NCBI GenBank assembly: GCA_964187785.1
Contig: OZ076410.1
Location: forward strand, 20,708,001 to 20,772,000
DNA from: Amphiscolops sp. MND2022
Taxonomy: Eukaryota
Length of the DNA stretch: 64,000 nt
Direction of reading: 5' to 3'
The notes under the pieces were generated by a model that did no database searches, was not told the origin of the DNA, and saw nothing but the letters and a program-made list of their open reading frames with translations. Within the stretch, counting starts at the first letter, position 1. Every line of letters starts with the position of its first letter. Shown here one piece after another: positions 4,554 through 45,133 of this stretch. The position numbers and the translations under genes are program-made.

Positions 4554-5042
4554 TCAGCTTATCATGAAGCGCTCACACTTAAGAATGAAGAATAAAGAAT
4601 ATATATTCGATGTAAAAGCAAAACTGCTTGTATGGCGTCCCTTGCATTGATTTCGGGCAAAACAAACTTTTTCTTTGAATTCCACATTTTAATTTGAAAC
4701 TGTTGATCTGAAAATTATAACCAAACTGACACGTTGTCCAGCTTGTATACACTTTTGTATACGTTTTAAAGCTATTTAGAAGACCATCTAGGTTTTTTCC
4801 GGCACTCTGCAGCTTTATTTGAAACTTTGTAAACTTCACAACAACGAAAAAGCTTTCCAGGTATAAATGGTCCGACTTGGCTGTGTCGGACTTGTTTTTG
4901 TTTCTTTTATTAACCTTACTACAGAGAGGCATTTGAGCTTCTTCAAACAGCAAAAGAATTTCAATGGGACAATTTCTGGTCCTTTCGCACTCACTGCCTA
5001 ACTGAAGGTCGAATACATTTTTAGTCGGTGCTTTTCTTTAGA

Positions 5043-5514
5043 AAAGAGTCGACTATAGTCATGGCTTTTCGTCAGTGTTTTTTAAGACCACCTGAACTGA
5101 CCAAAATAGTTCTACAAAAGTTCTACAAAATATTATTGCACCAAATTGCACCATTTGGCCTAGCGAACTGAACCAAAAAGTTTTTTTTCTGTTTTCCCGC
5201 GTAACATACCATACCGGGCGAGACCAAAGGGTCCCCCCTTTCAGTTTTTTCAGCATTGTGATGCTTTTTTTTCCGGAAAAATAATTTTCCCCAAAGGGTC
5301 CCCCTTTCAATTTTTTTGCTGTTTTGCTACAGAATGGATGTTGGAAAATCACAAAGGGTCTCCCTTTCAGTTTTTTTGGCATTGTGAGACTTTTTTCCAA
5401 AAAAATTTTTTTCATAAAAGGGTCCCCAACTCACCAATACTTTGACATACTGAAGTCCTTTTGCTATTTTTGAGCCTTAGATATGGCGCCGACTTGGGCC
5501 GGTTCCGGTTTGTT
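5043..5514 (+). repeat. Interspersed repeat, copy 2 (DINE-1/HINE-like)
   Basis: Repeated AAAGGGTCCCCCCTTTCA blocks; ends GAGCCTTAGATATGGCGCCGACTTGGGCCGGTTCCGGTTTGTT. Confidence 0.6.
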
Positions 5515-7853
5515 CATTTTTCTCGTGGATTTTTTTATTAAATCAAGTAGTTCCTCGACTTGACGTCGAGTGTTGTAACCATTATTGGTACTACTGATAG
5601 GGCATCGATGGCAGTGACGTTGTTACAATTCTGATTGAAGTGGGCGTTTCCCTCTAAGCCGAACTATACAGTTCAGAACCGGTCCTAGATAGATTGTCTC
5701 TGTAATTATTCTCAGAATCTCTCTCTGGAGCAAGTTGGTGTTTTTCAGGCGTTTCGAGACCCTATTTTTCATTAGACTAGGTATTTCTTCAAACTGTCTC
5801 AGGCATTTTTGTCTCTGATTGAACTTTTTGAGCACGGGAAAGGGAAAACTGTCGAGTGACAATGATTTGAATTAGAGTAAATATTCTTACCTTTCGCTTG
5901 TTTAATGTTGGGTTTCGCAAAGTATTGGAACAAAATTACTAAAGATTTCAAACCTTGTTCAGCTAAGGCGTCCTTCCGATGCAAGGAAATCCAAAAGAAG
6001 AAAGCTTTCTCGAAATTCAGGCTCTCGGGTTTATCGCAAACAAAAATTTAAATCGCTAGAAAAACATTATACTAATGATGGATGTAAAGTGCCATATTTT
6101 TGAAGTAGCACATAATTATCCCATGATAACACTTTAGACCACACGGGAAAATGCGCTATTGTAAAAGGTGGATGAAAGTCTAGGACGTAATCACAGTATG
6201 ATTACTCACACTTAAAGGCCGGGACGATGCCCTACTACACTGTCCAATATTTGAAACAAAAAATTTACCGAATAAGCTAGCAACACACTCAAAACAAAAA
6301 ACATCACTGAAAAATATTAGTATGTTCTTTGACTAAGTATTGTGTAGAAACTAGCATTTAACAAAATCAATTCGACAAAGTGATTCATCCTCGGCCGCTA
6401 CTCAATTGACTGAGCTGAGCATGCTGGCTGGGAAGATGACTCAAGTTATGACAATCAATAATAGTTCATAACAACATTGTTCAACAATTGCTAATTGTAT
6501 TCTAATGATCCGACACTGATTAGCAACTGCTAGCTCAGTATTAGCTATGAAAAACCATTTTCGGCCAAAAAAGCTGTTCTCGGCAGAAGTTCGCCTGAAA
6601 AAAAAACACGATTTTCGCCAAAAATTGTATATTTCGGAAACTTTCTTACCGATTATAATTACAACTAACAATCATCATGTCAGCGAGTCTAGTCGAGCGG
6701 CAAAGACTATCTAATACAGCAATCATTTTATTTAACTCAGTTTTGGTATCATTCGGATTTTCAGCTTTTGGTCCATTTTCCTATAACTCTGCTCTAAATG
6801 AAGAGAGTAGATTATTGATGATAGAGTTGTTCTATTAGTTGCAGAGAAATGTTACAAGTTACATCAATTTTTTAGTGAAACGTTTTATACTGAGTTAAGT
6901 TCTCCTTTTTCTCTATCTCTCTCTATCTGTTTCGTCCACCTTCCTCGTCGCGGTTGATTGCGTATGTTGTGTCATCCTGTGATCGGCCGGTCATCGTGAT
7001 TGGTTAATCTTCGTCTCCTCAACGAAATTTTGTTCCTTTAGAGTGCGTTTCCATGACAGAGTCATGACACATCAGTTTCAGCACAGTTTCCGGTAGAATG
7101 TTCGGTCGGTCCGCTTTGAACGGAGAAAAATCTCTCGACATTGACAGTTTGTTTGGACAATAAAATTTTGCGCAACGCGATGATGTAATTCTCACGCCAA
7201 ATCCGCGTATCGCCTGTGTCTGCACGTGCAAGCAGTTTAACTGGATCATACAAATCCATATCATAATTGAGTTAAGTTTCGGCAAAAAATGGGGTTTTTC
7301 GGCAGTTTTCGGCATTTCGGCGGTTGCCGAAAATTGGTTTTCCTAGTATTAACCCAAAGCACCAACTTTGCTTATTCAATCAAATGAATTGATGAGGCAA
7401 CGGGATGGGATGATTGATCCCGGCTGTTTTAGAGTTCACTGCCTGGTCGGCTGCCTGGTGGCAGCGCTGCTTGTCAGAAATATAAAAATTAGCGCCCAAC
7501 TATGATTGGCCGAGCAGCTAGTCAACTGACTGATTTTCTTTTTTTCTGAGGAGATACTGCCCGTACTGAGGTCCCATGCGATCCCATGCGATCCCATGCA
7601 TGGTCCATGTAAAAAGTCACATCCCACGCATGGCCATGCATGGACCATGCATGGCCATGCATGGGACTATTCATGGAAATTGAAAAACTTCAAATCGCGA
7701 AAAAAAAGTTTTGAATTCATTTTTTGGAAACTTGAAGTTGCGTCAAAGAAAAACTTCCATTTGAAAAAAAATTCCTAACTTTGAAAAATTCGAATTTGAT
7801 GAACGCGGCCATTTTGAATTTTATCATTTTTGGTTGTCATCATATCGGCGAGC

Positions 7854-7973: not shown

Positions 7974-8107
7974 TTGACATTAATCCCTTTGACAGTTTTT
8001 GGGTCTTATGAGATGTTTTTTTTCAGATCCTTGAATAATGAATGTTCACGCTAGTAAACTTTCCACAATTGTTCTACATTTTATGAGGATTGTTTATAAG
8101 AAGTTTC

Positions 8108-9307
8108 TGTCGGAACGACTGTTGGTATTGGTAGTAACCGCATTAAGTCTGTTCCCTTCTCCATTAACGGAGGCTAACTGATTAGTTAAACTAAGTACAA
8201 TGTCCGTAAGGTCTCCGATTTGTCTATTTATTTCGTTAAACCGATGATCTATGTCATAGTTATTGTTATTCTGACGCCTGGTTAATACGTCCTCAGAGTC
8301 AAGGTCTGCAATTTGGTCTCTCGATAAGACATCAGGGAAACTAGTTTCGCTTTCACTATCGCTTGACCTGTTCATAGTTCCGTTTTCTGTCTGTCTATTT
8401 TGATTACTTTGAGATCTGGTAGTTACCATAAAGAGGTTGGAGACTTTAAGTTTGAATTGAAGTGTGTTAGGTTTAAGTAAGAATTGATGATTTCAAGGTA
8501 CGGTAGTAAGCAACTTGTCTCGTCAGAAGTTACAATTCGTGTGTTTTCGGTATTGCCCGATTGAGTAATTATAAAAGTGTGTTAGCACCTTTCCTTTTAG
8601 CCAATGACGTTCAATCTACTAATTGTTGTTTAATTGCACTTGACGACTGCAACTACCAGTCGTCGCGGGTGATAATAGGTGTTTAATTACTCTTGTTTGA
8701 TGTAGTATGACCGCAAGCACCAGTCATTTCCGTGTTCGATTAACTCAATTACCTCTTAAACTGAGGCTTTACTACCGTGTATCCTTATCATCATAGTGAC
8801 TGCTTTAAATATCGTTTTGAAGTAATTTACTAATGGATACTGCACTAATTACTGATATAAATAGACGAAATGTTGTGAAATGATTGAGTATTCTAGTAAT
8901 ACTTTACATGTAATATAAAAAGTGTAAAAAACAATGGTTAAATGATGCACTATCACGATAGCTGATGACTGATTGTTTCAGTCGTACATGTATAAATCAT
9001 CTGCAATGACTGGATATTCCAGTCCTGGTTTTTAAACGATGCACAATAACATGGATGGATGTTTAAACGATGCACAATAACATGAATGGATGTTTAAACG
9101 ATGCACAATAACATGAATGGATGTTTAAACGATGCACAATAACATGAATGGATGATTGTTGGTTTCAGTCGTTATGTGTTCAACTGTATTGTTCGGCAAT
9201 TAAACTACTGTAATGTATTTACATGATGATTTGTATTTTAGGGAGTTTGATGTATGAATTGGTATTTTAGGGTTCATTTATTTCCTTCATGCTTGGCAGG
9301 CATGACA
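8108..9307 (-). repeat. 3' LTR (1,200 bp) of the giant Gypsy element
   Basis: Begins TG right after the PPT and ends CA next to the TSD. No differences from 22254-23453 found in by-eye comparison. Confidence 0.97.
9032..9155. repeat. 4 x 31-bp tandem repeat in the LTR U3 region (also at 23178-23301)
   Basis: Unit TTAAACGATGCACAATAACATGAATGGATGT, head to tail, no spacers. One substitution in the first unit is shared by both LTRs. Confidence 0.9.
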
Positions 9308-9321
9308 TTCCCCCCCTTTTT
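9308..9321 (-). promoter_or_regulatory. Polypurine tract (plus-strand primer)
   Basis: Minus strand AAAAAGGGGGGGAA immediately before the TGTCATG start of the 3' LTR. Confidence 0.9.
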
Positions 9322-10116
9322 GAGAGAGAGCGAGCTGTAGGGGTAATGGGAAAGGTGAACGACTGAGTTGAGTGGTAGTAGGTGGTTGAGTTGAGAATTG
9401 AACAGCGGCTGAAGTGGCGTGCGAGGTATGGAAGAACGTGTGGGTGGCAATGTAGTGGCTGAGACTTTCGGATGCATGAATGGACAAGGTGAGGTAGGCA
9501 AACAGTGGGTAGTCGGAAGTTGAAGTTTATTTATAGTAACAGTTTGACAGCCACGTCATCCGTTTAGTGCGCATAGAGTGTAATGTTTGTTTAAGCAACT
9601 TTTCATCGATCATCGGCAGTTGATTGATTTGTTGCGTTGTTGTAGAGTGAGTCAGTTGCTGGCTTTATTGCTTTTAAAATTGAATTTGGTCCTGTTTATA
9701 CTTGTCCTTATCCATCTTCGTTTTGTCAACCGTTGGTGTTGCTCATTCTTCCACAATAATAAAGGTAGTGCGATTTTTGTTTTTCCCAGTTAGTCCTGTA
9801 TTTTCCGGGTATCGATTAGGCGGTTAACTCGGGAGGGAATATATGTACTGTTATGGCTAGGGAAAACTTGACTGCGTTCTCTCTGCTGATTAGCATTTGA
9901 TATCCTGTGGGTGGAGTCGTGAATATGATTCCGCGAATGTCCGGTAATTACTTGGGTAGACCGTTTGATAGGGTGGGTTAGGTGTCCATTATATATTGAT
10001 ATAGGTGATCAGTCTATAACAATAAGAAATGGAAGAATGAGCTGTTGCAGTCGAGTCGCCGTCGCCATTTTATTGTTATCCCCGATCGTGTCGTGTGTTA
10101 CCTTATCGCTCCGACA

Positions 10117-11174
10117 ATGTCAGATGAAGAAGGAGTTTTATCCTTTAGTGGTGAGCTCTCTGCATTAGTTGCTGAAGTCGAGGACCAAATGGCTGCAGGT
10201 AATCCCCCGTTAGATGAGAGTGGGAGTGGACTGGATTTATCTGCAGTGCTGATGGAGAACAATCAGTGTTGCCAGTTCGCTGCGCGGGTTTCTGCGTCAA
10301 ACGTTGGGGATCTGGGTTGCTTGTTGGATGTCGTGCTTTCCCAGGAATTTGCTAAGTACTGGTTTTACATTTACTTTCTCCATAAGCGCTAGGCCTGAGT
10401 TATTCTGTCGTGGGGTTGCGTTCCGTGGATGCTGATCCCAGAACAACTGGAGCGTCTATGTCATCTCTGTTGTTGAGACTGTTCACTATTTTTGTAGCTG
10501 ATGTCAACATGACCGAGTTAGTCTCCTACTTGCGTCAGTTTCGATCTTCCGTGGCTACTGGGTCCTCCGGGAGTGCTGATTTGGATTCTGCTCCCATCTT
10601 GCGTCGTTTGGATGCTTTCCTCTCTTCGCATCTCGGTGGGTGCATTTGCGTTTACTGTTAAGCTAAGTTATATGTTGGGGGGGTCTTCTTCCATACCAGC
10701 GCCTGCAGTATACGGTTGCTGTTCTCTACTCAGTTGATGATAGGCGTCTTCGTTCGTTCGGTTCTAAGTAGGTGCTGAAAATTGTTGGTTGCTTTGTAGA
10801 TGCCAACGTTCGGGCTGACGTCATTGTGGGACAGTTCACGGAGTTGTTCCAACGTGTGGAACGAGAAATTCAACAGTGGGTCAAGGCAGCTGTTGAATCA
10901 AGCCTTGGCAAGCTAGGAACGGTGGGTGCTCTCGCCGTTGAGGAGTTCCTTGGAAAACTGAAGGGGGCACTGCAGGAACTCGGTCAATCGTCATTCTCTC
11001 CTTGTGTGGGTGATGTTCTTCCGCGCTCGTCATCTGTCGCTGGCAGTGTAGCTGGGTTTGAGAGTCGCCGGACATGTGTGGACTCGGACGTGCCGCCATC
11101 AGACTTCGGTGAACGGAGTGTGGCTCCATCTGGTGCTCCATCTTCCTCTGGCGTTGCGACGACTTCAAAACCTG
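10117..11174 (+). CDS. Upstream coding-like segments of the antisense cargo region (three putative exons; connectivity unresolved)
   Basis: ATG at 10117 (MSDEEGVLSF...). GC-rich open segments at ~10117-10355, ~10400-10635 and ~10700-11174 are separated by T/G-rich intron-like spacers. An in-frame TAG at 10769-10771 and a phase mismatch at the 11175 donor prevent a clean model. Confidence 0.5.
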
Positions 11175-11355
11175 GTAATGAATCTCACAAGATCATGCGA
11201 GGGGGTTTTAGTAGTAATTTGGGGGGGGGGGGTTGGTAGTTAACTAAGGACTAAGTACAAACACAGTTTTTTTTTTTGTTTTTTTTTTGGAGTTTTTGTA
11301 AGTTTCTAACGGGTGTTATTGATGTTATTTCAATTGGTATTTCTTGTATTTACAG

Positions 11356-14300
11356 GGCGAAACGTGCGATCAAGACGCTAAAGCCGTCCTTCTTTGTCTC
11401 CGGCGTCGTGGGGACCTTTGTTGGTTTCCCAAGACACAAGCGCGTCATCGATGGCTATGCTAGATGTCGTTTGTGCCGGGTAGACCTCAGCATTGCGGGA
11501 CGTGGGCTCCACAACTTGTGGGACCACTGGAAGGGGCGAGAGCACACTCGCCTCGAGCAGCGCTTTCGTATCATGTCCAATAGGCCCCTGTTGGACAAGT
11601 CGTGCAGGCCTGTTTCAGTAGAGGAGGACCGGAGGATCCGGGCAGAAAGAATGTCGGAGCCCCCTGTCATTCTGGAGTCCGAGTTTAGATTGACCGTTGA
11701 GGAGCGCGTGGCCATCGAGATCGAGGAGGAGGCTGCTGGCGCAAAACCGAAATTGGCTGAGACGAGTGCAGCATACCTTTGGCTATGCTGCTTCATTAAT
11801 GGTTTTGTGGAGTTGCGTGACTTTGCCAGTGTGACCCGCTTCGTCGAGTCATGGTCAGGCAGTATGCGGGGTGAAGTCGAGTTTGCTGAGCGTGCACTGT
11901 CATACCCTAAGTGTCAGGTAATACCTTTTCTTTGTTGTTGTCTTGCGTTTCTTCTACAGCTAGGTGTTGTGTTGTATTTTGCTTGTTTGTGTGTTGTTGT
12001 TGGATGGTTGCGTGATTGATAGGGTGTATCATTGTTGTTTTTTGTTTTAGAGTCTTGTCTTGTACGGATTATATCCGTTTGTGGTTGAGAAGCTTGGTGA
12101 CCTGCTGTCCTCAGGGGTGCGCTTTGGGCTACATGTCCACGTCGATGGGGCTATGCGGAGGCTGGATTGCCATATTTTTGATGGACTGTCAGTGAAAGTT
12201 GTTGTGCTGGCCGTGATCCCGGGCGGGAGCGAGTGGGAACGATCCCTTCTCAAGGTCGTGATGTCTCTGCTGTCTTGTGTGGAGTCATACCGAGGTCTAG
12301 CTGCAGTGAGTGTGGGCGGGAATCTACGTTTGGGACGTGCCCTTGCCAGTGTTGCGCATCCAGCTATGCCTCTTGTCACCCGTCGTTTCGATGCTGAGTG
12401 GCTCACAGATCTGTTGCGTCGAAAATTCATTGAGGAATCGAGTGGGCTGGAACCATTCAGCATTCTAGAATACTTTCGTTTTCGATTGGCAGCGGTGATT
12501 GAAGACTCGGCCTTCGATAATATGCCTGGACTACGCGAGGTTGGTTCATTTTGCTTTATGTTATGTTGGTTGGTCTGCTTCTTTCTTGTAGGAGGGGGGG
12601 GGGTCGAAGGTGGAGGTCTACTTTGCTTCTTCATGGCTTGAGTAATTAGTGGTGTGTTGTTTCTTGCTGTGTGGTTTATTGGTTTAATTTTCCTGATATC
12701 ACTGTTTTAGTTCGTGCGTGGTGGCGTCAATCAGTTTCGGGAGTTGTCTACACTGAGTGCGGAGTTGGTCGAGCGGTGGGATGACCTGGGGGCGTACTTT
12801 GGGGTCCATCGGGCGAACACTAGTGCTGAGACGTCGAACATTGCGAGCATGGAAACCCAGGTTTTCAATGACGCTATGACGCGACCCCGCTTTGCTGTCC
12901 TGAAGTTTCTAGCGGAGACTGGTTAGTATTGATGTTTATTCGTTCTTGTTTTTGGTTGTTTCTGTGAGGGTTCTTGTGTGTCCTTTGTTCAGTTCGGTCT
13001 TGGCATCCTGGTTCTTACGTGGGTGTGTGTGAGTTGTCGGCACGTTGGTTGATAATCGATTTTGTGTTTTAGTTGTAGCGAAGTGCCCTCGGCTGTGCAG
13101 CAGTGGCAGGGACCGTAATCTCTGGTTCGAGAGAGAGCTGGCAGCCTTTTTGCGTGTTTTGTTGTCAATGGTGGTCAATCCCGAGACGATCCCGCCAGAG
13201 TTCGAGGTCTTGGCTGTCCTGAAGCTGAAGATCAGTGAGAGCGTCCCTGTTGACAAGGCACGTTATCAGGCCTTGTTTGGGCAGTATTTCCGTTGGGACA
13301 TCAGTAGCCAAAAGCCTTTTTTCTACAAAGAGGTACAAAACTTCCTGCGCTCTGTTTGTGAGGCATGTGTTGCTGACTTCGACCAGGGGTGGGTGAGACA
13401 CCTTAGCCTACTGCCCTTCGATCCTTGTGCCATACAGTCCTGTTCTATGGATCGCCTGACAGACCTCTTAGTGGGTACGTTGTCCGTCCTCAGTTTCGGG
13501 GACTTGTGTAGTGGGGATAATGGAGCTATTATCGTGCAGCAGTACCGAGAAGCAGTTAGTTACTTCCAACGCCGGTGGGAATCGATCGTCGCAACTGTGC
13601 CGGTTATCGAAGATGCCGTTTCCTTATGGCTGTCGAACCCCTCATGGGACCGGTGCCCAGAGTTGCGTGGCGTCATCGAGGTTCTGTTCGTCGGGATGCT
13701 GCATGATGATTATCGAATCGATTTTTGTGATGTCGGAAGTACAGTGCTGGAGAAAGGCATCATGCTATCCAGTTTGCATCTCGTGAGGAGCTGGATGTCG
13801 AGCGGATTTGTCGGACATTCCCGTCTCTCAATGATTGGCTTTGTCCGTCATTGTAACTCCACGGATATGCAGGCTTCCCGGTTGAATGACAGTGTTCGGT
13901 CTATCCCGTGGGATCAGTTGGTCAAACGTGATGCAGATGAACTGCTCAGTCGGTCAATTGCAGTTCTGGAATCAACTGGGGGTCTCCCGTCTCGGCCTGT
14001 TGTCGATGACTACCGATCAGCTGTTTGTGATCAACTGAGATCACTGGAGTCCAGTCCTGTCGTCAGTCGCCGAAGTCCAGCTAAAGTGAATCGCTCTGCA
14101 GCTCAGATGCCACGTCTGCAGACTGAGGTTGTCGTGTCAACTCCTGCCCCGGGTCCATCGGGATCGAAACGGAAGGCTGCAAGTTCGAAGTCGTCTGAGC
14201 AGGGAGGTAGTCGAGGCCAAAGAACCGGAGGGCGTCCCGATAAAAAAGGACGGAAAACATTGGCGCACATCAGCGAAGGGGCAGGGCAGACGCGTCGGCG

Positions 14301-14361
14301 CTCTTTTACTATCGAAGAAACTAGCAACGAGGATGGATCCTCCTACTCAAAGGAGTATTAG
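11356..14361 (+). CDS. Antisense, intron-containing cargo gene: zinc-finger protein resembling a catalytically inactive hAT transposase (exons 11356-11917, 12051-12539, 12711-12921, 13073-14361; ~850 aa)
   Basis: Three GT-AG introns with matching phases: CAG|GTAATA...TTTTAG|AGT (0/0), GAG|GTTGGT...TTTTAG|TTC (0/0), ACTG|GTTAGT...TTTTAG|TT (1/1). The protein has a C-x2-C-x16-H-x5-H finger (CRLCRVDLSIAGRGLHNLWDHWKGREH). The order of helical and strand motifs resembles hAT transposases; this similarity is recognised by eye only. Confidence 0.8.
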
Positions 14362-16228
14362 TAGTAACTCTGTAAACTTTTTTGCCAACTTCTTTGTGTT
14401 TGCTGATATATATTCCCCTTGTTTTGTTTTTGTAATTAGTCACTTTGTCTCATTTCGGTACTGTAGTTTATTAGTATTCAGCTCTTTTGGTAATTGAGTT
14501 TTGGTGGATGCTATCACCGCAGTACTGTTATTTTTCCTTAGTACTAGGCTTCGAAGGTGTCACAAGTGGATTTTTCGCTAGTTCTGCATGTGTCCGAAAA
14601 GGAAAGAAATTTTTTCGTTATGTTGTGATGACTGCATGTACTTGTCGTTTTTGTTCGTTAGTCTAAGCTATTCTAGGGGTAGTTTTTTGTCGTGTTACAT
14701 GCGACTTAAAATTGTATGGCGCTTCTGCTGACTCCTGATGTTTTTTGTTTTTTTACATTTCTGCTTGATGCTAGGCTAGCTTTGTCGTTCTTAAGTGTGT
14801 GTATGGGGTCACCCATACCTCGCTATGATTTCATGTAAACTTACGTCTTAATTGTTATGTCGTTGTTTGCGAATTTCATGGAAGGTTTCGTATTGGTTAT
14901 GGTGGTCACCGCGGTAACCACCAACATAAAAATTGTTCACGTGCCAAGCTGTGCCGTGCATGGTACTCGAAAGTCAAGTCCTCCTATTCGTTGTTAGTGA
15001 ATGCTCGATGATGGTAACGAGACAGGGTGACTGTGGCCTTCGGTCCTTAGCACCGCGCCGCGAGGTACGTGACTGAGCAGCTCGCTCATTTCAAAGACCG
15101 AAATTCCAAGTAGTGTATCCTTGGTTTGGTGCATGACTTATTAGGTGTGCATGTAAGGTTTATGTTAATGTTCGTAAGGACTAATTTTCATGTATTTTAG
15201 TGTGTTTCGATATATTACATGTAGCGTTCCTGTGGACTCGACCTCATCATCGTTGATGTGTGTCCTGGGACGTCATCATACGTGATGTGTGTCGGCAAGA
15301 TCGCGCGTTCTTATGTTATGTTAACTGCAGTGTTACTAATTTGTTAGGCTGAGAAGGATGGACATGTTCAGGTCTCGTCGTCAAGTAGCTTTTTGGGGCC
15401 GCGTACTCGTTAATCTTTTCCCTATTGAGGCGAGTCTTTCGCATCTTAGGATACGTTTTAAGGGGCCGGGCGTTCATTGTTTTCAGGAGTAGGTAAGTTC
15501 TTGTTCTTACCGGTGTTTTGTTAGCTTTTAGAGCTTGGTTTTTTGTTTGGAAGTTTAGTTCATTGGAAAAGGTGAATTCCCGTCGGAACCACCTATGCAA
15601 AACTAACACTGAATCCAGTTGCTAAAGAGCAACCTTCATCTGTATGTATGACCAACCACACAAGCACGCTTTTTGACGACGCACCCACACAGCCAGGACT
15701 ATGCGTCTAAAGTGAAAAAGGTGGAGTATTGGTTGTGTTGTCCTAACGTTTGCCAGGCAGCAGATCATCATTGTTAGTTTGTTGCTTTTTTTTTGGGAAC
15801 GTTGTTTTCGTTCACGTTTCGTTAGCGGTGTTTTGACAGTTCGCTAAGTGGAATATTTCGTTTCAACTGTAGATGTGGTAAGTTTGGTGCGAATTGAATA
15901 AATTAGCGTTCGCAATTTTGCGCGCTACATGTACTTCCGGACCGCGAGTGTTGGAATGATAGGCGTGTGCAGTCGTTACTTTACCATTTGCTTGTTCCGC
16001 TAGTGATTGATGCTGATAAATTAAATAGTTTACACAGCGACAACGGAAGGGAATGGTCGTTTAATCATGTTAATTGGAGTGTTTGTTAGGTCGTTCAGAA
16101 TTTCCGCTATTGTTTGTTGAATGCTTGGTGTACTAGGGTGTAATTGTAAAACAATTACCTTTATGGTCAGATGAAAAGGCTGTTGATGACTGCTGTTAGC
16201 AGTCGTTGGTTTTTATGGTTGTGTGTTT

Positions 16229-19200
16229 TTATAGGTTTCTGTTTTTCAGAAGCAGCTGTTGAAGCGAAGGCGTTCCGTGTAGTTCGTGCATCAGGAAGTC
16301 AGGGTACGTGGTAGGTTTTGGGTTGTGTCTGAGTCCGTACCGAGACATAGTGTGTCGTGATGTCGGTGGAGGGCGGTCATTTGTTTGATATTTATTGTTG
16401 TTTGTTTCAGAATTGTTCGAGGTAACGGTGTCTGGTTGTGGTACTTGTGTTTCAGCTTGGCTTTCAGGTATGGAAATGTTTTGATCTGGTTCTATGCTTT
16501 GTCGTTCGTAGTATATCATTCCATGGTCGGCCTGTAGTTCTTCGAAGTCCGATTGTTCAGGGATTGCGTGTTGTGGTTGTTCGTGAGCAGGATTTGGTAG
16601 GTGATTGTCGAACAGCTCCTGTTCGTTGAGGGCATCAGGATCTTCAAAGTATTGTGATGAATTGTCTTGAATGTCTTCAATTGGTGCGTTTGGTGTAAAT
16701 GGGCGGAGCCTCATTCTGTGAACGCATTGAGTGCGAAGAGTTCCAATCTTACGTATAATGTAATTTGAATTGGACAAGACTTTGACCACTTTGTATGGGC
16801 CTTCCCACTTGAATTCCTTGAATGGAATTTTGTCAGATTGTTGAGACAGTCTTTTGTTTAGCAGAAAGGTGAAGTCATTTACTTTCAGAGGTGAAGCTTG
16901 CGCTTTTCGGTCGTAGTAATTCTTGTATTTGTGGAAGGCTTCGATTATGTTGTCATGTGTTTGTTGGAATTTTTTGTTCATGTTATCGAGTATCCCAGTG
17001 ACGTCGGTAGTGTTGCGTTGTTCAGTTAGTGGGTTTCCGAATTTGACGTCAAGGGCATTGAATGGAACACGTCCGTGGAAAATTTCAGTGGGTGTACATC
17101 GAATAGCCTGGTGGTAGGTTGTGTTATGGGCCATTACGGCCATGTTGACGTATTTATGCCATTGTGGTGAATCAGCTGAGATGTTAATTTTAAGGATTTG
17201 CTTTAGTCTCTGGTGAGAACGTTCAACCATTCCGACCGTTTGCGGGTGTTTGACAGATGCGTGTGCGATTTTTATACCGGCAGACTCCATCAGGGAGTTG
17301 AACAGTTGGGCTGTGAACGTTGATCCTTTGTCTGTTAGGATTGTCTTGGGTACGTAGGAATGTTGTGTAAAAATTTGCATAAGCGCTTCTACGACCGACT
17401 TTGTGTCCGGTTTACGGATAGGTATTGCGAAGAGGTACCTAGAAAAGTAGTCGCATGCAGTGAGTATGTGTGTGAATCCGTTGGAGGGTGGGAGTTCACC
17501 GACTAAATCAATTTCTAGTATGTCTTCTGGTCCGTTACAAGGGTCATATATTTGTTGGAGTGGTGGTGTGATTGCAGCTTTTCGGATTGGTTTTGAGCGG
17601 ATGCAGTCCTGACAGTTCGAGACATATTGCAGTACCAGTTCAGAGAGGTTCGGGGAGTAGTACCTTTTACGTAGCTCGTGGAGCATTTTATTACAACCAG
17701 GGTGACCTTGCAGAGGGTCATCGTGCAAAGATTGGATGATTTTTTGGATAGTTTCAGTAGGTGTGACAATTTGTTTACACTTAATTTTACCTGTACCATC
17801 GAAAAAGTTCCTGTACAAAACGTTGTTCACTACTTCAAGTCTTTTCTTGTTTTTGACTAGTTTTTGGAAAAACTGACTTTCAAAGTTCACATGATTAGGA
17901 AGGGTTTCCTTTTGATTCAAAATTCTAATCATGCGTTGGATGTCAAGGTTTACGAGTTGATCCTGGATGATTTGAAACTCCCCATTGGGGCATACCTGGT
18001 TTACCACGTTGTCATGAAGCTTTCGCCTGAATCGGGTGAACGTCATCTCGTCATGTTGCCCTGTGATGATGGGTGTGATCTGATGACGGATGGTTTCTAT
18101 CCTCTCGCGAAACTGTCCACTCGATTCGTCACTGCACATGGGGACCTGGTCCAGTATGGCGTTGATGGCTTCATTTTGTTTGGTGGTGGTGGTTTGTTGG
18201 TCATCAGGTATGTATTCTTCTTCTTCTTCGTCCTGCTTCGGTGTCCGTGACGCCAGGTCGATCTCGACGTGAAAGACTGGTATCTCGTCGTTGAGTTTGA
18301 GGTGGATTCTCTCCTCTGGTCGTATGTCAAGACGAGACAGGTAGTCTGCAGCAGGATTCTCAGTTCCAGGAACATGGGCAAGTACGAATTCGAATTGAAG
18401 CGTCTGATCGCAGTAATTCCATAGCTTCGGGGGAATTCGTTTGGACTGGAAAAAACGGGTCAGTGCTTTATTGTCCGTCATTACAATTGTTGGTTTCTTG
18501 ACACCCCAGAGTATGTGTGCGAATTCGTCGAATGCGAAATGCATCGCCAGGAATTCTTTCGCATACATTGTAAGTGACATTTGGCCCTCCGTGAATCGTT
18601 GGGATCCAAATGATACTGGTGCGTACGTCTTCATTGGTCCGTCGTTAGTTTCGGTGTAGTCTTCTATCAGGAGGACATATCCTGCCGCGTGCTCACTGGC
18701 GTCACACATTATAACAAGTTGTTTGTCGGGTAATGGTAGGCGTAGTGAGAGTTTCGCAGCTTTGGCAAGGTTTTCGTTAATCTCGAAAATGATGTCCTTG
18801 TGTTGTTGGTTCAGTTGGAATTTCACATCTTTCTGTAGCAGTTTGTACAGTGGGGTGAGCTTTTCTGCCAGGCGTGGTATGTACTGCCTGTAGAACTGGA
18901 CAAACCCGATGTACCTTTGGAGGGATTTGACTGATGTGGGTAGTTTGATCTTTTTGAGGAAGTCATCAATTTTGTCTTCGAGTGGGGCGACACCCTTTGA
19001 TGTGATGCTTCTCCCAAGGAAATCAATTTGTGGGTGGCCAAACGCACATTTTGCCATTGATAGTTTCAATCCTGCTTTCTGGATTTGCTGGAACACAGCT
19101 TCAATGTTGGACAGTAGTTCATCAACGGTGTGGGCAGCAATCCCAATGTCATCGACATATTGCGCGCATTTGTCCGCTTTCACGAGTGCATCAACGTATT

Positions 19201-21049
19201 CTCGTACTGTGCTGTTGAATGCTGACAAGGATCGGTTGAGTCCCTGTGCCAGTCGTAAATAAGCGAATGTGCGGCTGCCGAAGTTAAATGCCAGAAGTTG
19301 TATGGATTGCTCGTCCGCCATCTGCAGGCAGTGGTACGCCTGCGAACAGTCCAGCTTGCAGAAATACTTTTTTCCTGCCATGTGCTGGGCGGCGTCGGCG
19401 ATGGTGGTTACTGGATGATTATGTTGGTTGTAATCATTTTTCAGGAGGTGGTTGATTCTGCGCAGGTCCACGAGTATGCTGAGTTTCCCGTTAGGTTTGC
19501 GCTGAGCGAATATTGGTGAGGAATACTTGCTGTATGGCAACGTCGTGATGATTCCGTACTCCTGCATCAGTGCTAGCTCGACGAGTAGGTCGTCTTTGAG
19601 ATTTGTGGGTGTGGGTAAACTCTGCGCGTAGACTGGCTCATCGTGCTTCGGGGTGAGTTTAATTTTGAAGTCGGTATTGATGCCTATGTCAAGGCGGTGT
19701 CTGGCGAACACATTGTTATACTTCACAAGGAGGTTCTCAATCTGTTGTCGTTCGTGCTCATTCAGGATTGAGTTTTCCCATTTGAAGTTGGCAAGGAACT
19801 CCTTGCGTTGTTTGTCGTCTGCTGTTGGATCCAGTTTCTCTTCCTCACGGAGTTTAGTGATTTCGTCATATATCCGCCTTTCAATGCGGTTCAACTTGGA
19901 CGGGTCATCACAGGTCTCCGGTGTTGGGTACCATCGGCGGTTGGTTTCGGTGCCGGGCTCCTGGAACAGCTGGTTCAATACATTATCAGCTTCGTCTGGG
20001 TATTTGGTGATCAGTGTCAATTGTTCGTTTGACATCGGTTGTAGGTTCTTTGCCTGGTTGGGAGTCATTATTCTGAATGTGGCCACTGTCGTGTTCGGGT
20101 TGAGGGTGATTGTGTGGCAGGTGAGGTTGGTGATCTGGACATGGCTTTTCATCTCAGTGATTTGTGTTAGAGCAGGGGACACTAGTAGTTGGGTCTTCCT
20201 TTCGAAAGCTGGAAAGGTTTCTACAGTGCCCTGGATTGTCCCGAGGTCCTTTTCTGCTATGACAGGGACCATGATTTGGTGATCCGGTTGTACCACTATT
20301 TTCTGCGATGTGCGTAGTTCGAGCATCTGGACTTTGTATCGGCCTCTTTCTGGTTTAAGTTGAAGGGTAATGTCTGGGAATTTGACCACGTTATTGGCAA
20401 GGTCAAGCGTCACTGAGTATTTCTTGAAGAAGGACATTCCGATCAAGATGTTGCCCATGGTTGGTAGAATCATAAAGGTTTCCTCGAATACTTTACCGCC
20501 AATGAAAAATCGGAGTAATACTTGTTTCCGGACTGGGACGATGCTACCGTTGGCAATTTGGATTTTGAAATCCGGTGCTGGGTATTCTTCGAGAAGTGCT
20601 GCTGGATGAGCTGACAAGATCCGTCTGAGTTCGTCTTCTGACATGGCACTCCTTATTGCTCCCGTGTCGAGGAGGCCATGGTTCTCGTATGCTCTGAATT
20701 GCAATGGGACGTATAACATCTTGTCCTTTTTGTTTAACTGAAGTGTTGCTGTTAACACCTGGATCGCCACGTCCTTCTTGCGGTTTGTTGTTTTTCTTGT
20801 ACAGTCAGTCGTCATAGTCAAGTTAGAGTGCTGTCTGTCTTCTGTCGGTTGTAAAATCACCTCTGTTGGTTCGGAGGGAGAGTTCGCTTCGTTGTTGGTT
20901 GTCTCGTGGGTAGTTGGAGTCATGGGTTTCTGATCCTGCCGAAGATCAGTTGCCCGGTTTTTGTAGTTCTTTGTGTAGTAGTAGTTGTTTGTGTTGCGCA
21001 CTTTGTTATTGTAGTGGTCAGTCGAATGACGTGGCTTCAGAAGTTTTTT
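16229..21049 (-). CDS. pol: Gypsy Pol polyprotein (protease, RT, RNase H, integrase), uninterrupted; probably expressed by -1 frameshift from gag
   Basis: 1,590-aa open ORF with protease LLDTGA, RT YVDDI, RNase H DASEHAAG, integrase H-x6-H...C-x2-C zinc motif and DLVG/TDKG/VERSH catalytic motifs. Integrase lies after RNase H, the Gypsy order. Confidence 0.96.
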   Translation of the reverse strand, partial: KKLLKPRHSTDHYNNKVRNTNNYYYTKNYKNRATDLRQDQKPMTPTTHETTNNEANSPSEPTEVILQPTEDRQHSNLTMTTDCTRKTTNRKKDVAIQVLTATLQLNKKDKMLYVPLQFRAYENHGLLDTGAIRSAMSEDELRRILSAHPAALLEEYPAPDFKIQIANGSIVPVRKQVLLRFFIGGKVFEETFMILPTMGNILIGMSFFKKYSVTLDLANNVVKFPDITLQLKPERGRYKVQMLELRTSQKIVVQPDHQIMVPVIAEKDLGTIQGTVETFPAFERKTQLLVSPALTQITEMKSHVQITNLTCHTITLNPNTTVATFRIMTPNQAKNLQPMSNEQLTLITKYPDEADNVLNQLFQEPGTETNRRWYPTPETCDDPSKLNRIERRIYDEITKLREEEKLDPTADDKQRKEFLANFKWENSILNEHERQQIENLLVKYNNVFARHRLDIGINTDFKIKLTPKHDEPVYAQSLPTPTNLKDDLLVELALMQEYGIITTLPYSKYSSPIFAQRKPNGKLSILVDLRRINHLLKNDYNQHNHPVTTIADAAQHMAGKKYFCKLDCSQAYHCLQMADEQSIQLLAFNFGSRTFAYLRLAQGLNRSLSAFNSTVREYVDALVKADKCAQYVDDIGIAAHTVDELLSNIEAVFQQIQKAGLKLSMAKCAFGHPQIDFLGRSITSKGVAPLEDKIDDFLKKIKLPTSVKSLQRYIGFVQFYRQYIPRLAEKLTPLYKLLQKDVKFQLNQQHKDIIFEINENLAKAAKLSLRLPLPDKQLVIMCDASEHAAGYVLLIEDYTETNDGPMKTYAPVSFGSQRFTEGQMSLTMYAKEFLAMHFAFDEFAHILWGVKKPTIVMTDNKALTRFFQSKRIPPKLWNYCDQTLQFEFVLAHVPGTENPAADYLSRLDIRPEERIHLKLNDEIPVFHVEIDLASRTPKQDEEEEEYIPDDQQTTTTKQNEAINAILDQVPMCSDESSGQFRERIETIRHQITPIITGQHDEMTFTRFRRKLHDNVVNQVCPNGEFQIIQDQLVNLDIQRMIRILNQKETLPNHVNFESQFFQKLVKNKKRLEVVNNVLYRNFFDGTGKIKCKQIVTPTETIQKIIQSLHDDPLQGHPGCNKMLHELRKRYYSPNLSELVLQYVSNCQDCIRSKPIRKAAITPPLQQIYDPCNGPEDILEIDLVGELPPSNGFTHILTACDYFSRYLFAIPIRKPDTKSVVEALMQIFTQHSYVPKTILTDKGSTFTAQLFNSLMESAGIKIAHASVKHPQTVGMVERSHQRLKQILKINISADSPQWHKYVNMAVMAHNTTYHQAIRCTPTEIFHGRVPFNALDVKFGNPLTEQRNTTDVTGILDNMNKKFQQTHDNIIEAFHKYKNYYDRKAQASPLKVNDFTFLLNKRLSQQSDKIPFKEFKWEGPYKVVKVLSNSNYIIRKIGTLRTQCVHRMRLRPFTPNAPIEDIQDNSSQYFEDPDALNEQELFDNHLPNPAHEQPQHAIPEQSDFEELQADHGMIYYERQSIEPDQNISIPESQAETQVPQPDTVTSNNSETNNNKYQTNDRPPPTSRHTMSRYGLRHNPKPTTYPDFLMHELHGTPSLQQLLLKNRNL

Positions 21050-22575
21050 GGCTGGCTAGATGATGCTTCGGTGAAGTCCTGTTGGTAGTACTCATCGTTG
21101 GTTTGGTGTTGTTGTTCCCCTGGTGTGAACTCATTCATTTCATTGGTTGGGTAGGGGCTATTTTGTGCTCTTCTGAAGTCACGTCGGAAGTCCCTGTTTT
21201 CAGTTGTGGTTTGTCTGTTGTAGGGCACACTTCCGTAGGCAGAAGTTTGGGGTATTCTATACCTGCAGTCTTTTGCAGAGTGGCCTGTGTACCCGCAAAT
21301 TTGGCAGACCAGTTTGGCGTTGTATTTCGGTTGTGTTTCTGCGTGGTTGTTGTTCTGTTGTTCGGGCTTTTTCTGAGCTTGAGAGTTGCTGTTACCCGCT
21401 GCCTCGTCTCGCTGTCGTTTTCGACACTCTGCCCATTTGTGTCCGTATATCGCGCAGTATCTGCAATTGCCATCAAATTTCTTCTTGGTAGGTGGTCGTT
21501 CATTTTCGTTTCGTTTCTGGGTGACTGGCTTGTTCGGGACTTCTTGCGTCTGAATAGCCTGATTAAATGGTTGGAGCAGTTGTTGGTTTGGTAACAACTG
21601 TGCATACTGGCATCTCCTCTGAACGAACGTTTTAATGTCCTCGATGCTGGCGTTGTGTTTTCCAGCGATTGCCAATTCATTTTGAAGCTGAATTGGTAGT
21701 TTGGCGAACAGGAAGGTTTGAACGATTTCCTGTGCCTTGTCTCCGTATGCTTGTTTGGCAATCTTTTTGTAGTTTGCAAGGAAGGTACTAAATGACTCGG
21801 TTGTTGGGTCATACCGAAGCTGGTCAAATTTGAATTTCGAGACTTCTGAGAGTTCCTCTTTTGCATATTCCTTTTTGAATGCCGTCAGTATGTCTCTCAG
21901 TGTTGTTTCCGTTGTGATCGGGAGTGTCTGCCAAAACTCAATCGCATCATCCCTGAGGAGACTCTGGAAGTAGTTGAGCTTTTGTTCCTCGGTGAGCTTG
22001 TGGGCATGTGGTCGTAAGTGATTGAGCAATAGATGTTCAAATTCGTTGTATTTGTCTCGATTTCCTTTAAATAGGGGTACTTGGGTCTGCAGGATTTTTG
22101 GCTGGGTCAAGGTTTCCCCCATGGTGCTGCGGAGATGGTGGATTTCCGTCATCACATCGGTCAACTGCGGAATACTGGCGTCACTTCTTGGTGTTCCGCT
22201 GGGTGGTGTTGTCCGAGATCCTGATGGTCGTGAGTTCGAGACTCCTGTCACCATGTCGGAACGACTGTTGGTATTGGTAGTAACCGCATTAAGTCTGTTC
22301 CCTTCTCCATTAACGGAGGCTAACTGATTAGTTAAACTAAGTACAATGTCCGTAAGGTCTCCGATTTGTCTATTTATTTCGTTAAACCGATGATCTATGT
22401 CATAGTTATTGTTATTCTGACGCCTGGTTAATACGTCCTCAGAGTCAAGGTCTGCAATTTGGTCTCTCGATAAGACATCAGGGAAACTAGTTTCGCTTTC
22501 ACTATCGCTTGACCTGTTCATAGTTCCGTTTTCTGTCTGTCTATTTTGATTACTTTGAGATCTGGTAGTTACCAT
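21037..22575 (-). CDS. gag: Gag (512 aa, two CCHC zinc knuckles); ORF starts inside the 5' LTR
   Basis: Capsid-like core (VPLFKGNRDKYNEFEHLL), CRYCAIYGHKWAEC and CQICGYTGHSAKDC. The first ~107 codons lie within the LTR. Confidence 0.93.
   Translation of the reverse strand: MVTTRSQSNQNRQTENGTMNRSSDSESETSFPDVLSRDQIADLDSEDVLTRRQNNNNYDIDHRFNEINRQIGDLTDIVLSLTNQLASVNGEGNRLNAVTTNTNSRSDMVTGVSNSRPSGSRTTPPSGTPRSDASIPQLTDVMTEIHHLRSTMGETLTQPKILQTQVPLFKGNRDKYNEFEHLLLNHLRPHAHKLTEEQKLNYFQSLLRDDAIEFWQTLPITTETTLRDILTAFKKEYAKEELSEVSKFKFDQLRYDPTTESFSTFLANYKKIAKQAYGDKAQEIVQTFLFAKLPIQLQNELAIAGKHNASIEDIKTFVQRRCQYAQLLPNQQLLQPFNQAIQTQEVPNKPVTQKRNENERPPTKKKFDGNCRYCAIYGHKWAECRKRQRDEAAGNSNSQAQKKPEQQNNNHAETQPKYNAKLVCQICGYTGHSAKDCRYRIPQTSAYGSVPYNRQTTTENRDFRRDFRRAQNSPYPTNEMNEFTPGEQQHQTNDEYYQQDFTEASSSQPKNF
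21043..21049 (-). promoter_or_regulatory. Candidate -1 ribosomal frameshift slippery heptamer A AAA AAC
   Basis: The gag end reads CCA AAA AAC TTC TGA. A -1 shift enters the pol frame (...LLKPRHSTDHYNNKVRNTN...), which is open to the annotated pol ORF. Confidence 0.75.
22241..22253 (-). promoter_or_regulatory. Primer binding site TGGTGACAGGAGT
   Basis: Directly follows the CA end of the 5' LTR and begins TGG (complement of tRNA CCA). It resembles tRNA-Leu-type PBSs; tRNA identity not verified. Confidence 0.85.
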
Positions 22576-23453
22576 AAAGAGGTTGGAGACTTTAAGTTTG
22601 AATTGAAGTGTGTTAGGTTTAAGTAAGAATTGATGATTTCAAGGTACGGTAGTAAGCAACTTGTCTCGTCAGAAGTTACAATTCGTGTGTTTTCGGTATT
22701 GCCCGATTGAGTAATTATAAAAGTGTGTTAGCACCTTTCCTTTTAGCCAATGACGTTCAATCTACTAATTGTTGTTTAATTGCACTTGACGACTGCAACT
22801 ACCAGTCGTCGCGGGTGATAATAGGTGTTTAATTACTCTTGTTTGATGTAGTATGACCGCAAGCACCAGTCATTTCCGTGTTCGATTAACTCAATTACCT
22901 CTTAAACTGAGGCTTTACTACCGTGTATCCTTATCATCATAGTGACTGCTTTAAATATCGTTTTGAAGTAATTTACTAATGGATACTGCACTAATTACTG
23001 ATATAAATAGACGAAATGTTGTGAAATGATTGAGTATTCTAGTAATACTTTACATGTAATATAAAAAGTGTAAAAAACAATGGTTAAATGATGCACTATC
23101 ACGATAGCTGATGACTGATTGTTTCAGTCGTACATGTATAAATCATCTGCAATGACTGGATATTCCAGTCCTGGTTTTTAAACGATGCACAATAACATGG
23201 ATGGATGTTTAAACGATGCACAATAACATGAATGGATGTTTAAACGATGCACAATAACATGAATGGATGTTTAAACGATGCACAATAACATGAATGGATG
23301 ATTGTTGGTTTCAGTCGTTATGTGTTCAACTGTATTGTTCGGCAATTAAACTACTGTAATGTATTTACATGATGATTTGTATTTTAGGGAGTTTGATGTA
23401 TGAATTGGTATTTTAGGGTTCATTTATTTCCTTCATGCTTGGCAGGCATGACA
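22254..23453 (-). repeat. 5' LTR (1,200 bp) of the giant Gypsy element
   Basis: TG...CA ends, followed by the PBS, and matches 8108-9307. Confidence 0.97.
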
Positions 23454-24701
23454 GTTTCGTCAAGTTCCTAATTTTAGGTCCTGTCGCTTTCCCCCAATAT
23501 GCTTTTTACCCAATCTCTGAAGGCACATTTCTAACATTGTTTTTGAATTGAATATTTTTGCTGAATTTTTTTTCATCTCAGAAAAGGCCATAGATAAGTT
23601 TTTAATTAAGCCAGGTGTTTCATTGCCTTTCTAGAAGTCGTTTTCGGGCGTTTTTGCGATTGCTTTTCCCCTCAAAACCATGCATGGCCATGCATGGTCC
23701 ATGCATGGTCCATGCAATTCCATGCTTAAAAGTGACATGGCCATGCATGGTCCATGCATGGACCATTGCATGGGATTAGCATGGACCATGCATGGGATCG
23801 CATGGGACCTCAGTACGGGTGTGACGTCGTCTCAGACAGCGTATTTAATTGACTGATATCTGTCTGTGAGCTGTTTGTTTGTTTTCTCGCCAATTAATCA
23901 CTAGCGATTTTTGCGTTGACTAATATCTACATAAAAATGTATTAAATTGGCATTCTAGTCGTCACAGGCAGCGTTTTTATTGACTGTTTTCTGCCTGTGC
24001 CCTGTTTCATTGTTTGTTTTCCACTAGAGACTATTATGAGATGTACTAGAGAGATGTATAAAATCGGGACTTTTATTTTCATGATAATATCAAACTATTT
24101 TATACAAAACTATGTATGAATTGTGTAATTCAAACTGTCTTGGTTTTTGGTTTACTGATTAGTTTTCTTCGTTTTACTCTTCGCCGTTGTTCCGCTTCCG
24201 CTTACATACTCCCATTTTGTCCCCAGAATTTTCACAACGCTGTGGGGGCTGTGACATCGAGTATTTCACTTCATCGCAAAAAAAAACGTTTTTCCCAATG
24301 TTTTGAGAACACGCAGTGTCATCACGAACTCCCCATGGTACGAAACTGTCCCATCTCAAAGCTTTCATCAGTTTTTTTCTGAGCAAACAAAAAAATGAAA
24401 AGCTCGAACGCCCAACAGAGGTGAAGTATTTTGCAGAATTGCAGAACGGCACTTTTTACTGAAGCAAGTCATTTCAGAAGATTTAAATTTTCACAAAACA
24501 AAACGAGAGGGAATGACAGTAAATTTCAAATGCTGAGATATACCTTCAGCTCTGTTTATGTACAGGTTATAGCCTGTTGTTGAGTTATGTGGCAAAGAAG
24601 AAAGTCGAAAACGATTCAATTGATTTTCACTTGACAATACGGTGAAAAGAACTCGATGCTTTTCGAAGCTTAAGGTTATGGGTTCACCAACCTGTTAATA
24701 A

Positions 24702-36613: not shown

Positions 36614-36798
36614 TCGACTCTCTTACAAAGTCAAAAGAACTTACTTCACTATGAAATTTGTTCCGCTCCGCAGTAAAGTGTAAACGGAAAAACTAATATA
36701 GTTGGTTAATGTCGCGACCTCGTGGTTCTCTGGTCCAGTTATGCAAGTGTAGAAAGCGAACAACAGATGCTGCCCCGAAGAATAAACTGGTTTTAGTG

Positions 36799-44985: not shown

Positions 44986-45133
44986 TATGTAAACATCATA
45001 CTTTTGTTTCATACCGAGATTATATCAATTGATACAAAAACATAGATCGAAAAAGATCGCTTGACATTCCTTTATGTTCAAAAGAGATGCTAGATAAAAT
45101 CTTTGTTTTGTTATTCAACCAAGAAGTAGAACA

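Follow-up and report, generated by a model that had tools for sequence, protein, structure and literature searches.

What does an animal long terminal repeat (LTR) retrotransposon carry when it extends far beyond gag and pol, and does the additional DNA serve the element? Animal LTR retrotransposons are usually described as gag-pol units, sometimes accompanied by a sense-strand env. The question is raised by a Ty3/Gypsy element of 15,346 bp located at 8108-23453, on the minus strand, of a 64,000-nucleotide stretch of DNA from Amphiscolops sp. MND2022 (the window; contig OZ076410.1 of assembly GCA_964187785.1, positions 20,708,001 to 20,772,000). The answer judged reasonably probable here is that the element is an autonomous and young member of an abundant Ty3/Gypsy clade and carries, antisense to gag-pol, a single spliced gene (the cargo) whose product would be a nuclear accessory factor serving the element.

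The limits of the element and of the additional DNA are defined by the following features (positions in the window; related loci are designated by L and a number).

8103..8107, no strand assigned: left target site duplication (TSD), GTTTC; the identical five bases lie at 23454-23458, directly outside the LTR ends
23454..23458, no strand assigned: right TSD, GTTTC, pairing with 8103..8107
8108..9307, minus strand: 3' LTR, 1200 bp, TG..CA, identical to 22254-23453 at 1200 of 1200 positions
22254..23453, minus strand: 5' LTR, 1200 bp, identical to 8108-9307 at 1200 of 1200 positions
9308..9321, minus strand: polypurine tract (PPT), A5G7AA on this strand, adjoining the 3' LTR; the same tract occupies the same place in L001 and L002
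22232..22253, minus strand: primer binding site (PBS) starting TGGTGACAGGAGTC, directly after the 5' LTR
9308..16228, cargo on the plus strand: insert of 6921 bp between pol and the PPT, inside the frame formed by the LTRs, PBS and PPT

TG and CA form the exact limits of the match between the LTRs, whose flanks share no similarity. An initial annotation, made from the sequence alone, had described LTRs, a GTTTC TSD, a PBS and a PPT enclosing gag, pol and the region 9308-16228, and each of these was indeed located. Direct TG..CA LTRs, a 5-bp TSD, a PBS, a PPT and the order of the pol domains place the element in Ty3/Gypsy (Metaviridae). It is a recent insertion of a very young family. The PBS complement resembles the T-arm, acceptor and CCA end of a tRNA, and its first 14 nt are common to the window element and L004; tRNA and Rfam scans of the window and of the relative loci gave no match to the primer tRNA. 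The internal region measures 12.9 kb, with gag and pol of ordinary size.

21037..22575, minus strand: gag open reading frame (ORF), 512 codons, with DUF1759, Retrotrans_gag and a weak zinc knuckle (Pfam)
16229..21055, minus strand: pol, open frame from 21055 with an ORF of 1590 residues from 21001 (Pfam)

The gag reading frame extends open for 322 nt into the 5' LTR (22254-22575, minus strand), with an in-frame ATG spanning the LTR/PBS junction. Since the frame runs back into the LTR, translation probably begins downstream of the PBS, at an in-frame ATG at 22152 or 22122. The pol frame opens 19 nt ahead of the gag stop codon in the -1 frame, an overlap that would correspond to the usual layout for frameshift expression. 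The pol matches to Pfam follow the Gypsy order (RVT_1, RT_RNaseH, Integrase_H2C2, rve, Integrase_p58_C), together with a weak aspartic-protease match; by Pfam position, the protease lies at 108-194, the reverse transcriptase at 502-663, RNase H at 738-866 and the integrase at 1081-1434. Peptidase_A17 and DUF5641 were not found in this pol by Pfam, unlike that of a neighbouring Bel-Pao element. The closest pol relatives are ENA proteins without names, and the 90% identity cluster to which pol belongs holds 289 sequences.

Whether the insert is part of the mobile unit can be decided from other copies. The copy at L001 is 98.95% identical across the whole 15.3 kb, cassette included, and lies at a different genomic site with its own TSD (GCATC) and unrelated flanks. 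An exact look-up of the window gag protein found it identical on seven contigs. Of these contigs, L011 represents the locus of the window itself as found in another assembly (99.87% identity over 21.5 kb, including the neighbouring Bel-Pao element), and thus assigns the window to the predominant eukaryote of ENA sample ERZ25074608; the remaining six are separate insertions, 99.5-99.8% identical to the window element. The cassette is present in five of these six as far as the retrieved DNA extends, the sixth being truncated inside pol. Moreover, pol stands beside the cargo in 13 of 15 distinct loci with cargo homologues; L003 is rearranged, and the contig of L016 is too short to tell. The presence of the cassette in independent copies, one of them with a different TSD, and in diverged lineages makes it part of the mobile unit and not a neighbour; the check suggested by the initial annotation thus bears out its reading. 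The 90% cluster of the best-conserved cargo exon (the finger exon) contains 48 distinct sequences, one of which occurs on 11 contigs, and the family is both abundant and young. The copies differ in their state of preservation, with a single break each in pol and in the cargo for L001, one break in the cargo in L009, at least one break in pol in L013, truncation within pol in L012, and no break in the parts reached of L010, L014 and L015.

The idea that the cassette arose by a single nested insertion, or is an adjacent gene trapped between a pair of solo LTRs, has nothing in its favour beyond the unusual size of the element. No terminal inverted repeats (TIRs) bounding the cassette and no separate duplication were found, the cassette is kept in all lineages, and identical LTRs, a matching TSD, the PBS and the PPT frame it. 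This explanation can thus be regarded as already refuted. The base composition of the insert is also that of its surroundings in the element: plus-strand A is about 0.19 and the strand is rich in G+T across the whole element, cassette included, whereas the flanks differ. A strand composition common to cassette and element fits a long residence of the cargo in the element.

The content of the insert is best described as one gene.

10117..14361, plus strand: cargo gene, seven exons and six introns of 120-171 nt, coding sequence of 3360 nt, 1119 residues, antisense to gag-pol
9308..10116, plus strand: region upstream of the cargo ATG, putative promoter and 5' untranslated region; 76% identical to L002, TATATA at 9990
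11357..11917, plus strand: best-conserved cargo block, 187 residues, with C-x2-C-x16-H-x5-H, a BED-like finger and a helical region
13075..14358, plus strand: last cargo exon, 428 residues, a predicted helical region and a tail rich in Gly, Arg, Ser and Lys
14362..16228, plus strand: spacer from the cargo stop to the pol stop, putative cargo 3' untranslated region; AATAAA at 15897 and ATTAAA at 16020; 87% identical to L002 within the gag-pol block

The initial annotation had placed an antisense gene cassette between pol and the 3' LTR. Its orientation is borne out by plus-strand coding blocks over 10117-14361 opposite a minus-strand gag-pol; the word cassette holds in that an extra gene rides on the mobile unit, and needs amending in that this is a single spliced gene with long untranslated flanks and not several genes. 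Joining the blocks gives a frame from the ATG at 10117 to the stop codon at 14359-14361, 1119 codons in all with no internal stop. Several observations support the splicing model. The coding blocks shift frame at the same places in all relatives, and nucleotide conservation among six members falls between them, in the introns. GT..AG occurs at the same alignment columns in these six diverged members, even with exons down to about 36-40% protein identity; one splice donor, at a variable exon end, cannot be aligned among them. In a protein alignment of 25 sequences the conservation of the finger exon starts and stops abruptly at the splice sites. Finally, the introns are T-rich (45% T) and the exons are not. 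A sense-strand third ORF or env was considered and rejected: the longest minus-strand ORF in 9308-16228 has 195 codons and mirrors a cargo exon, and the coding signal is on the plus strand. With no sense-strand third ORF of that kind after pol, the element is not an env-carrying (errantivirus-like) Gypsy.

The substitution pattern indicates that the cargo gene is under purifying selection. The ratio of nonsynonymous to synonymous divergence (dN/dS) is 0.06-0.25 wherever dS is measurable (0.06-0.22 against L002 and 0.12-0.24 against L003); with more distant members dS is saturated and protein similarity persists. These values bear on the possibility that the cassette acts as RNA, through double-stranded or small RNAs arising from antisense transcription, its reading frame being incidental. 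Antisense non-coding transcripts of other retroelements are cited in PMC7264820, and the A-poor plus strand can by chance hold ORFs as long as about 200 codons, even in the region opposite pol. Against this, amino-acid similarity is kept despite saturated synonymous sites at the dN/dS given above, and conserved splice sites joining a frame of 1119 codons without a stop would not be expected of a non-coding transcript. A purely RNA-based role is accordingly considered improbable.

A 438-codon plus-strand ORF of the cargo gene recovered 25 clusters of homologues, from 99% to 34% identity, in a collection of 5.8 billion proteins, all from ENA assemblies, and the last exon recovered 139 relatives by HMMER among 1.8 billion representatives, none longer than 479 residues. 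No cellular homologue was found with exon queries among the 5.8 billion clustered and 1.8 billion representative proteins, the relatives all being ENA proteins without names; the homologue search applied a length filter of about 140-445 residues, which could miss long proteins sharing only the finger exon, and the filter-free HMMER search took the last exon only. As far as such single-exon queries go, no annotated proteome in the searched collection contains the cargo gene. Scanning with the best-conserved exon returned no relatives from IMG/VR or from JGI metagenome contigs.

This exon remains 67-74% identical even where the others are at 28-40%, and four potential metal ligands of its finger, C37, C40, H57 and H63, each show at least 90% conservation across 66 sequences. 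No cargo exon reaches the Pfam threshold, and only sub-threshold matches are obtained; zf-BED is the only family matched repeatedly (15 of the 66 members at E<=1, best 0.006). The protein begins with an acidic N-terminus and ends in a basic tail in which Gly, Ser, Arg and Lys abound. Together with the finger, this tail suggests nuclear nucleic-acid binding, and the cargo protein is probably a nuclear DNA-binding accessory factor.

Transposases of the hAT type typically have a BED finger as their N-terminal domain, and the cargo might accordingly descend from a hAT-type DNA transposase captured long ago and still used as a nuclease or integrase. The likeness of the cargo to BED is itself weak. 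No exon matches a transposase, RNase-H-like or hAT dimerisation domain in Pfam at E up to 10, and the cassette has no TIRs. Membership among the hAT transposases is rejected for want of these features, and an origin by hAT capture is very improbable.

A number of observations weigh against the proposal of a functional, DNA-binding cargo, and they concern both the protein and the gene. In the window copy the zf-BED match (PF02892) scores 13.7 bits against a cut-off of 20.6 (E 0.065), below threshold. An AlphaFold2 model of the finger exon shows a beta-beta-alpha arrangement around the ligands at a low predicted local distance difference test score (pLDDT) of 57 overall and about 50 at the finger. 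The best two Foldseek matches are the BED domains of ZBED3 and ZBED1, at non-significant E-values of 2.4 and 3.1. It is because three weak lines agree that the finger is called BED-like, and not BED. The model of the last exon, from an 18-sequence alignment, has a pLDDT of 35 and its structure was not used; PDB sequence searches with profiles of three exons found nothing. As for the gene, the promoter and poly(A) sites are motif matches only. The cargo dN is two to three times that of pol in most comparisons and four to eight times against L002, and thus reflects a weaker constraint than that on pol. The initial annotation had also called the element intact. As this term implies, the window copy has open frames for gag, pol and each of the seven cargo exons; of its six cargo splice donors, however, one is non-canonical, and this copy may itself fail to yield a normal mRNA.

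The age of the association can be appreciated from diverged lineages. The order cargo (plus), pol (minus) and gag (minus) is common to L002, L004, L005, L006, L007 and L018. The last cargo exon is 69% identical to that of the window in L002 and 40% in L004, the similarity of the latter extending over about 400 residues (E 1e-92). In both L002 and L004 the cassette is enclosed by a pair of LTRs, those of L004 having imprecise, BLAST-derived ends. The most distant of these arrangements is that of L007, which measures at least 18.5 kb; its pol shares only 59% identity with that of the window and belongs to a cluster of 1482 members. The element keeps the finger exon (tblastn E 5e-14) and the next exon (end-to-end hhalign, probability 69%). 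The same series of exon ORFs occurs on a 5-kb contig of a second sample, ERZ1742291.

LTR elements are documented to transduce host genes (PMC11963269), and the cargo protein bears no viral or transposon signature in Pfam. The cargo could therefore be a transduced host gene, a mere hitch-hiker of no use to the element. This has little probability in view of the retention of the gene and of its intron positions across lineages with a pol only 59% identical, of the purifying selection, of the lack of a cellular homologue in the collections searched, and of the adjacency of pol and cargo in nearly all of the distinct loci. L003 was examined as a possible stand-alone host copy and rejected, as the locus has been rearranged: an inverted piece of the cassette lies alongside, and both pol and gag are missing.

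L003, 7529-11356, plus strand: cargo gene lacking pol and gag, beside an inverted partial cargo
L003, 13431-14912, minus strand: inverted partial cargo, from a closer lineage, adjoining the cargo gene

The modules of the element have not diverged equally. Between the window (14683-22199) and L002 (11567-19070), the block comprising gag-pol and the spacer is 87% identical, compared with 68-76% for the cargo coding region and 79-81% for the LTR; dS is 0.45 for pol, 0.90 for gag, and above 1.2 or saturated for the cargo. The modules would thus be of different depths, as expected from recombination between lineages, and this suggests an exchange of modules between co-existing lineages. L002 also contains a 2.2-kb repeat (4176-6399 and 19072-21295) made of the LTR plus 1.1 kb of adjacent leader and gag, which indicates a tandem pair of elements sharing one LTR.

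How could a retrotransposon maintain a gene with introns? Introns lying antisense in a retroelement RNA are not recognised by the splicing machinery. The full-length RNA of the element would be the minus-strand transcript, in which the cargo introns are reverse-complemented; being antisense there, they would be retained through reverse transcription with the rest of the element. After integration, the cargo would be transcribed on the plus strand from a promoter of its own, placed either within the 0.8 kb ahead of the start codon or in the neighbouring LTR, and its transcript spliced to encode the 1119-residue protein. This protein might then aid the element, for example in transcription control, in the choice of integration site or in countering host silencing. 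Long retention under purifying selection in multiplying lineages argues that the protein serves the element. We infer from sequence that the cargo is expressed, that its product is nuclear and binds DNA, and that the element benefits from it.

A regulator could also act in the opposite direction, restraining the element or serving the host as a repressor or a copy-number control rather than helping propagation. The evidence for a DNA-binding protein fits an activator and a repressor alike, and dampening of the sense RNA by antisense transcripts has been discussed for plant elements (PMC7264820). Effective self-restraint is at odds, however, with the youth of the family and with the position of the cargo lineages among the most abundant Gypsy clusters of the genome (90% clusters of 289 and 1482 pol sequences). 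A self-limiting role is for these reasons unlikely, and an accessory factor that promotes the element is preferred.

In plants, an additional antisense ORF located after pol and ahead of the 3' LTR has been described in Grande (gene23), RIRE2, Retand and PvRetro13, with no function assigned to it (PMC7264820, PMC11963269). A dedicated promoter and a nuclear location of the product have been reported for the Grande gene. Neither source mentions introns, and one of them calls for a search for spliced antisense transcripts (PMC7264820, PMC11963269). These plant Tat-lineage elements (Grande of maize, RIRE2 of rice, Retand of Silene and PvRetro13 of Phaseolus) resemble the present one in the position and orientation of the extra gene, its occurrence in most family copies, its conservation between species and the long internal region; the family thereby shows the layout of the plant aORF-3R type, with an antisense ORF that most copies carry downstream of pol and ahead of the 3' LTR. 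The comparison is one of layout, not of sequence, and the present case differs in its animal host, its seven exons with six conserved introns and its BED-like product of 1119 residues. In fungi, Boty-like Gypsy elements of Botrytis and Sclerotinia have an antisense gene, brtn, between pol and the 3' LTR, as cited in PMC7264820. They share the place of the antisense gene and a non-plant host and differ in that this host is a fungus; neither homology nor a multi-intron likeness is in evidence here.

The HBZ gene of human T-cell leukaemia virus type 1 (HTLV-1) is spliced and encodes a nuclear regulator. Here too, a retroelement has a gene on its opposite strand; as HTLV-1 is an exogenous vertebrate retrovirus and the protein is of another class, the analogy is one of layout only. 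The antisense promoter of HTLV-1 is located in the 3' LTR (PMC7264820).

Among animal elements, the giant Gypsy Burro/GYPSM1 of planarians has extra domains on the sense strand, and in the review of giant eukaryotic transposons describing it the term antisense does not occur (PMC6431247). Like the window element, Burro is an animal Gypsy-like element far above the usual size with extra functions. It exceeds 30 kb and places its extra domains in a giant sense polyprotein or in sense accessory ORFs, in contrast to a separate spliced antisense gene in elements of 15-18 kb. Assignment to the Burro type, with an internal region above 20 kb and a sense polyprotein, was rejected on the size of the internal region and the ordinary gag and pol. 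LTR elements of bdelloid rotifers have captured an ORF3 (env-like, DEDDy or GDSL) with recognisable domains (PMC5408684). They share the acquisition of ORFs downstream of pol by animal LTR elements; neither introns nor an antisense coding gene are reported for them, the word antisense being used a single time, for small RNAs, and the word intron not at all (PMC5408684). For the protein, the nearest likeness is to ZBED-type fingers, in the C-x2-C...H-x5-H pattern, the modelled beta-beta-alpha fold and the ZBED3 and ZBED1 domains as best fold matches; all these matches are below significance, and the rest of the cargo protein matches nothing known.

No published animal case of an antisense extra gene was found in a literature search, and the papers on rotifer and annelid LTR elements report none. 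The element is thus an animal counterpart of elements with an antisense extra gene, hitherto reported from plants and fungi, its distinctive traits being a multi-intron gene structure and a BED-like product. The initial annotation had proposed an undescribed family of cargo-bearing animal LTR retrotransposons: the family is cargo-bearing and no description was found in the literature, but that it is undescribed is not proven, novelty being judged from the literature and not from Repbase, Dfam or GyDB.

Another group of elements in the same genome may have a similar gene. L008 (16.1 kb) and L017 are Gypsy elements whose pol is only 43-47% identical to that of the window and falls in clusters of 850-1547 sequences.

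L008, 15304-19491, minus strand: three antisense ORFs after pol, homologous to those of L017
L017, 15327-19601, minus strand: three antisense ORFs after pol, homologous to those of L008

The antisense ORFs of L008 and L017 are 53-62% identical to each other, and the largest bears a C-x2-C...H...H motif. Compared with the window family, hhalign gives this ORF a probability of 43-46% (E of about 2e-4) and the last ORF one of 15-17%. A remote homology of the L008/L017 antisense gene to the cargo is possible on this weak similarity. It is tentatively proposed, with rather less confidence than the role of the cargo itself, that an old, large and still multiplying clade of animal Gypsy elements keeps a spliced antisense gene for a DNA-binding accessory protein, much as regulatory genes are kept by complex retroviruses, that this second deep group is remotely related, and that antisense intron-bearing accessory genes form an overlooked general layer in at least one animal lineage.

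These elements matter as a whole clade of twice the usual size, abundant and very recently active, which maintains a large intron-bearing gene on the opposite strand under purifying selection. If the cargo is expressed, animal retrotransposons can own regulatory genes with a normal eukaryotic gene structure, antisense orientation would be the natural means by which a retroelement carries introns, and a protein family outside the annotated proteomes would gain a testable role. Since annotation of a prokaryotic style or on repeat-masked sequence hides such genes, they may be commoner than the literature suggests.

Another feature of the window element lies within its LTRs.

9031..9154, also 23177-23300, no strand assigned: 31-bp tandem repeat in four copies within the LTR (TRF, 98% matches)

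Family members differ in LTR length (1169 bp in L001), as would fit a variable number of 31-bp repeats. As a matter of speculation, the array could be a regulatory or binding array.

The surroundings of the element are rich in other transposable elements; an Rfam scan of the window and of the relative loci for non-coding RNAs found nothing.

27210-38239, plus strand: Bel-Pao LTR retrotransposon, with DUF1759 in gag and Peptidase_A17, RVT_1, rve and DUF5641 in pol
43425-49999, no strand assigned: two 1.7-kb direct repeats (98.6% identical) around about 3.2 kb, without a long ORF and with a strong skew of A over T
59685-62363, minus strand: 892-codon ORF of a long interspersed (non-LTR) element, with apurinic-type endonuclease and reverse transcriptase domains

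The Bel-Pao element has three LTR copies (27210-28627, 35198-36614 and 36796-38239) in the layout LTR-internal-LTR-LTR. The repeats at 43425-49999 probably belong to a non-autonomous LTR element. Near other copies of the Gypsy element, gene fragments encoding a transient receptor potential channel and a helix-loop-helix protein were observed; with the Bel-Pao element of the window, they point to an animal host. In L013, an ORF at 399-1151 (plus strand), about 9 kb from the element copy, has a weak double-jelly-roll capsid-like domain and may represent a Polinton-like or viral insertion.

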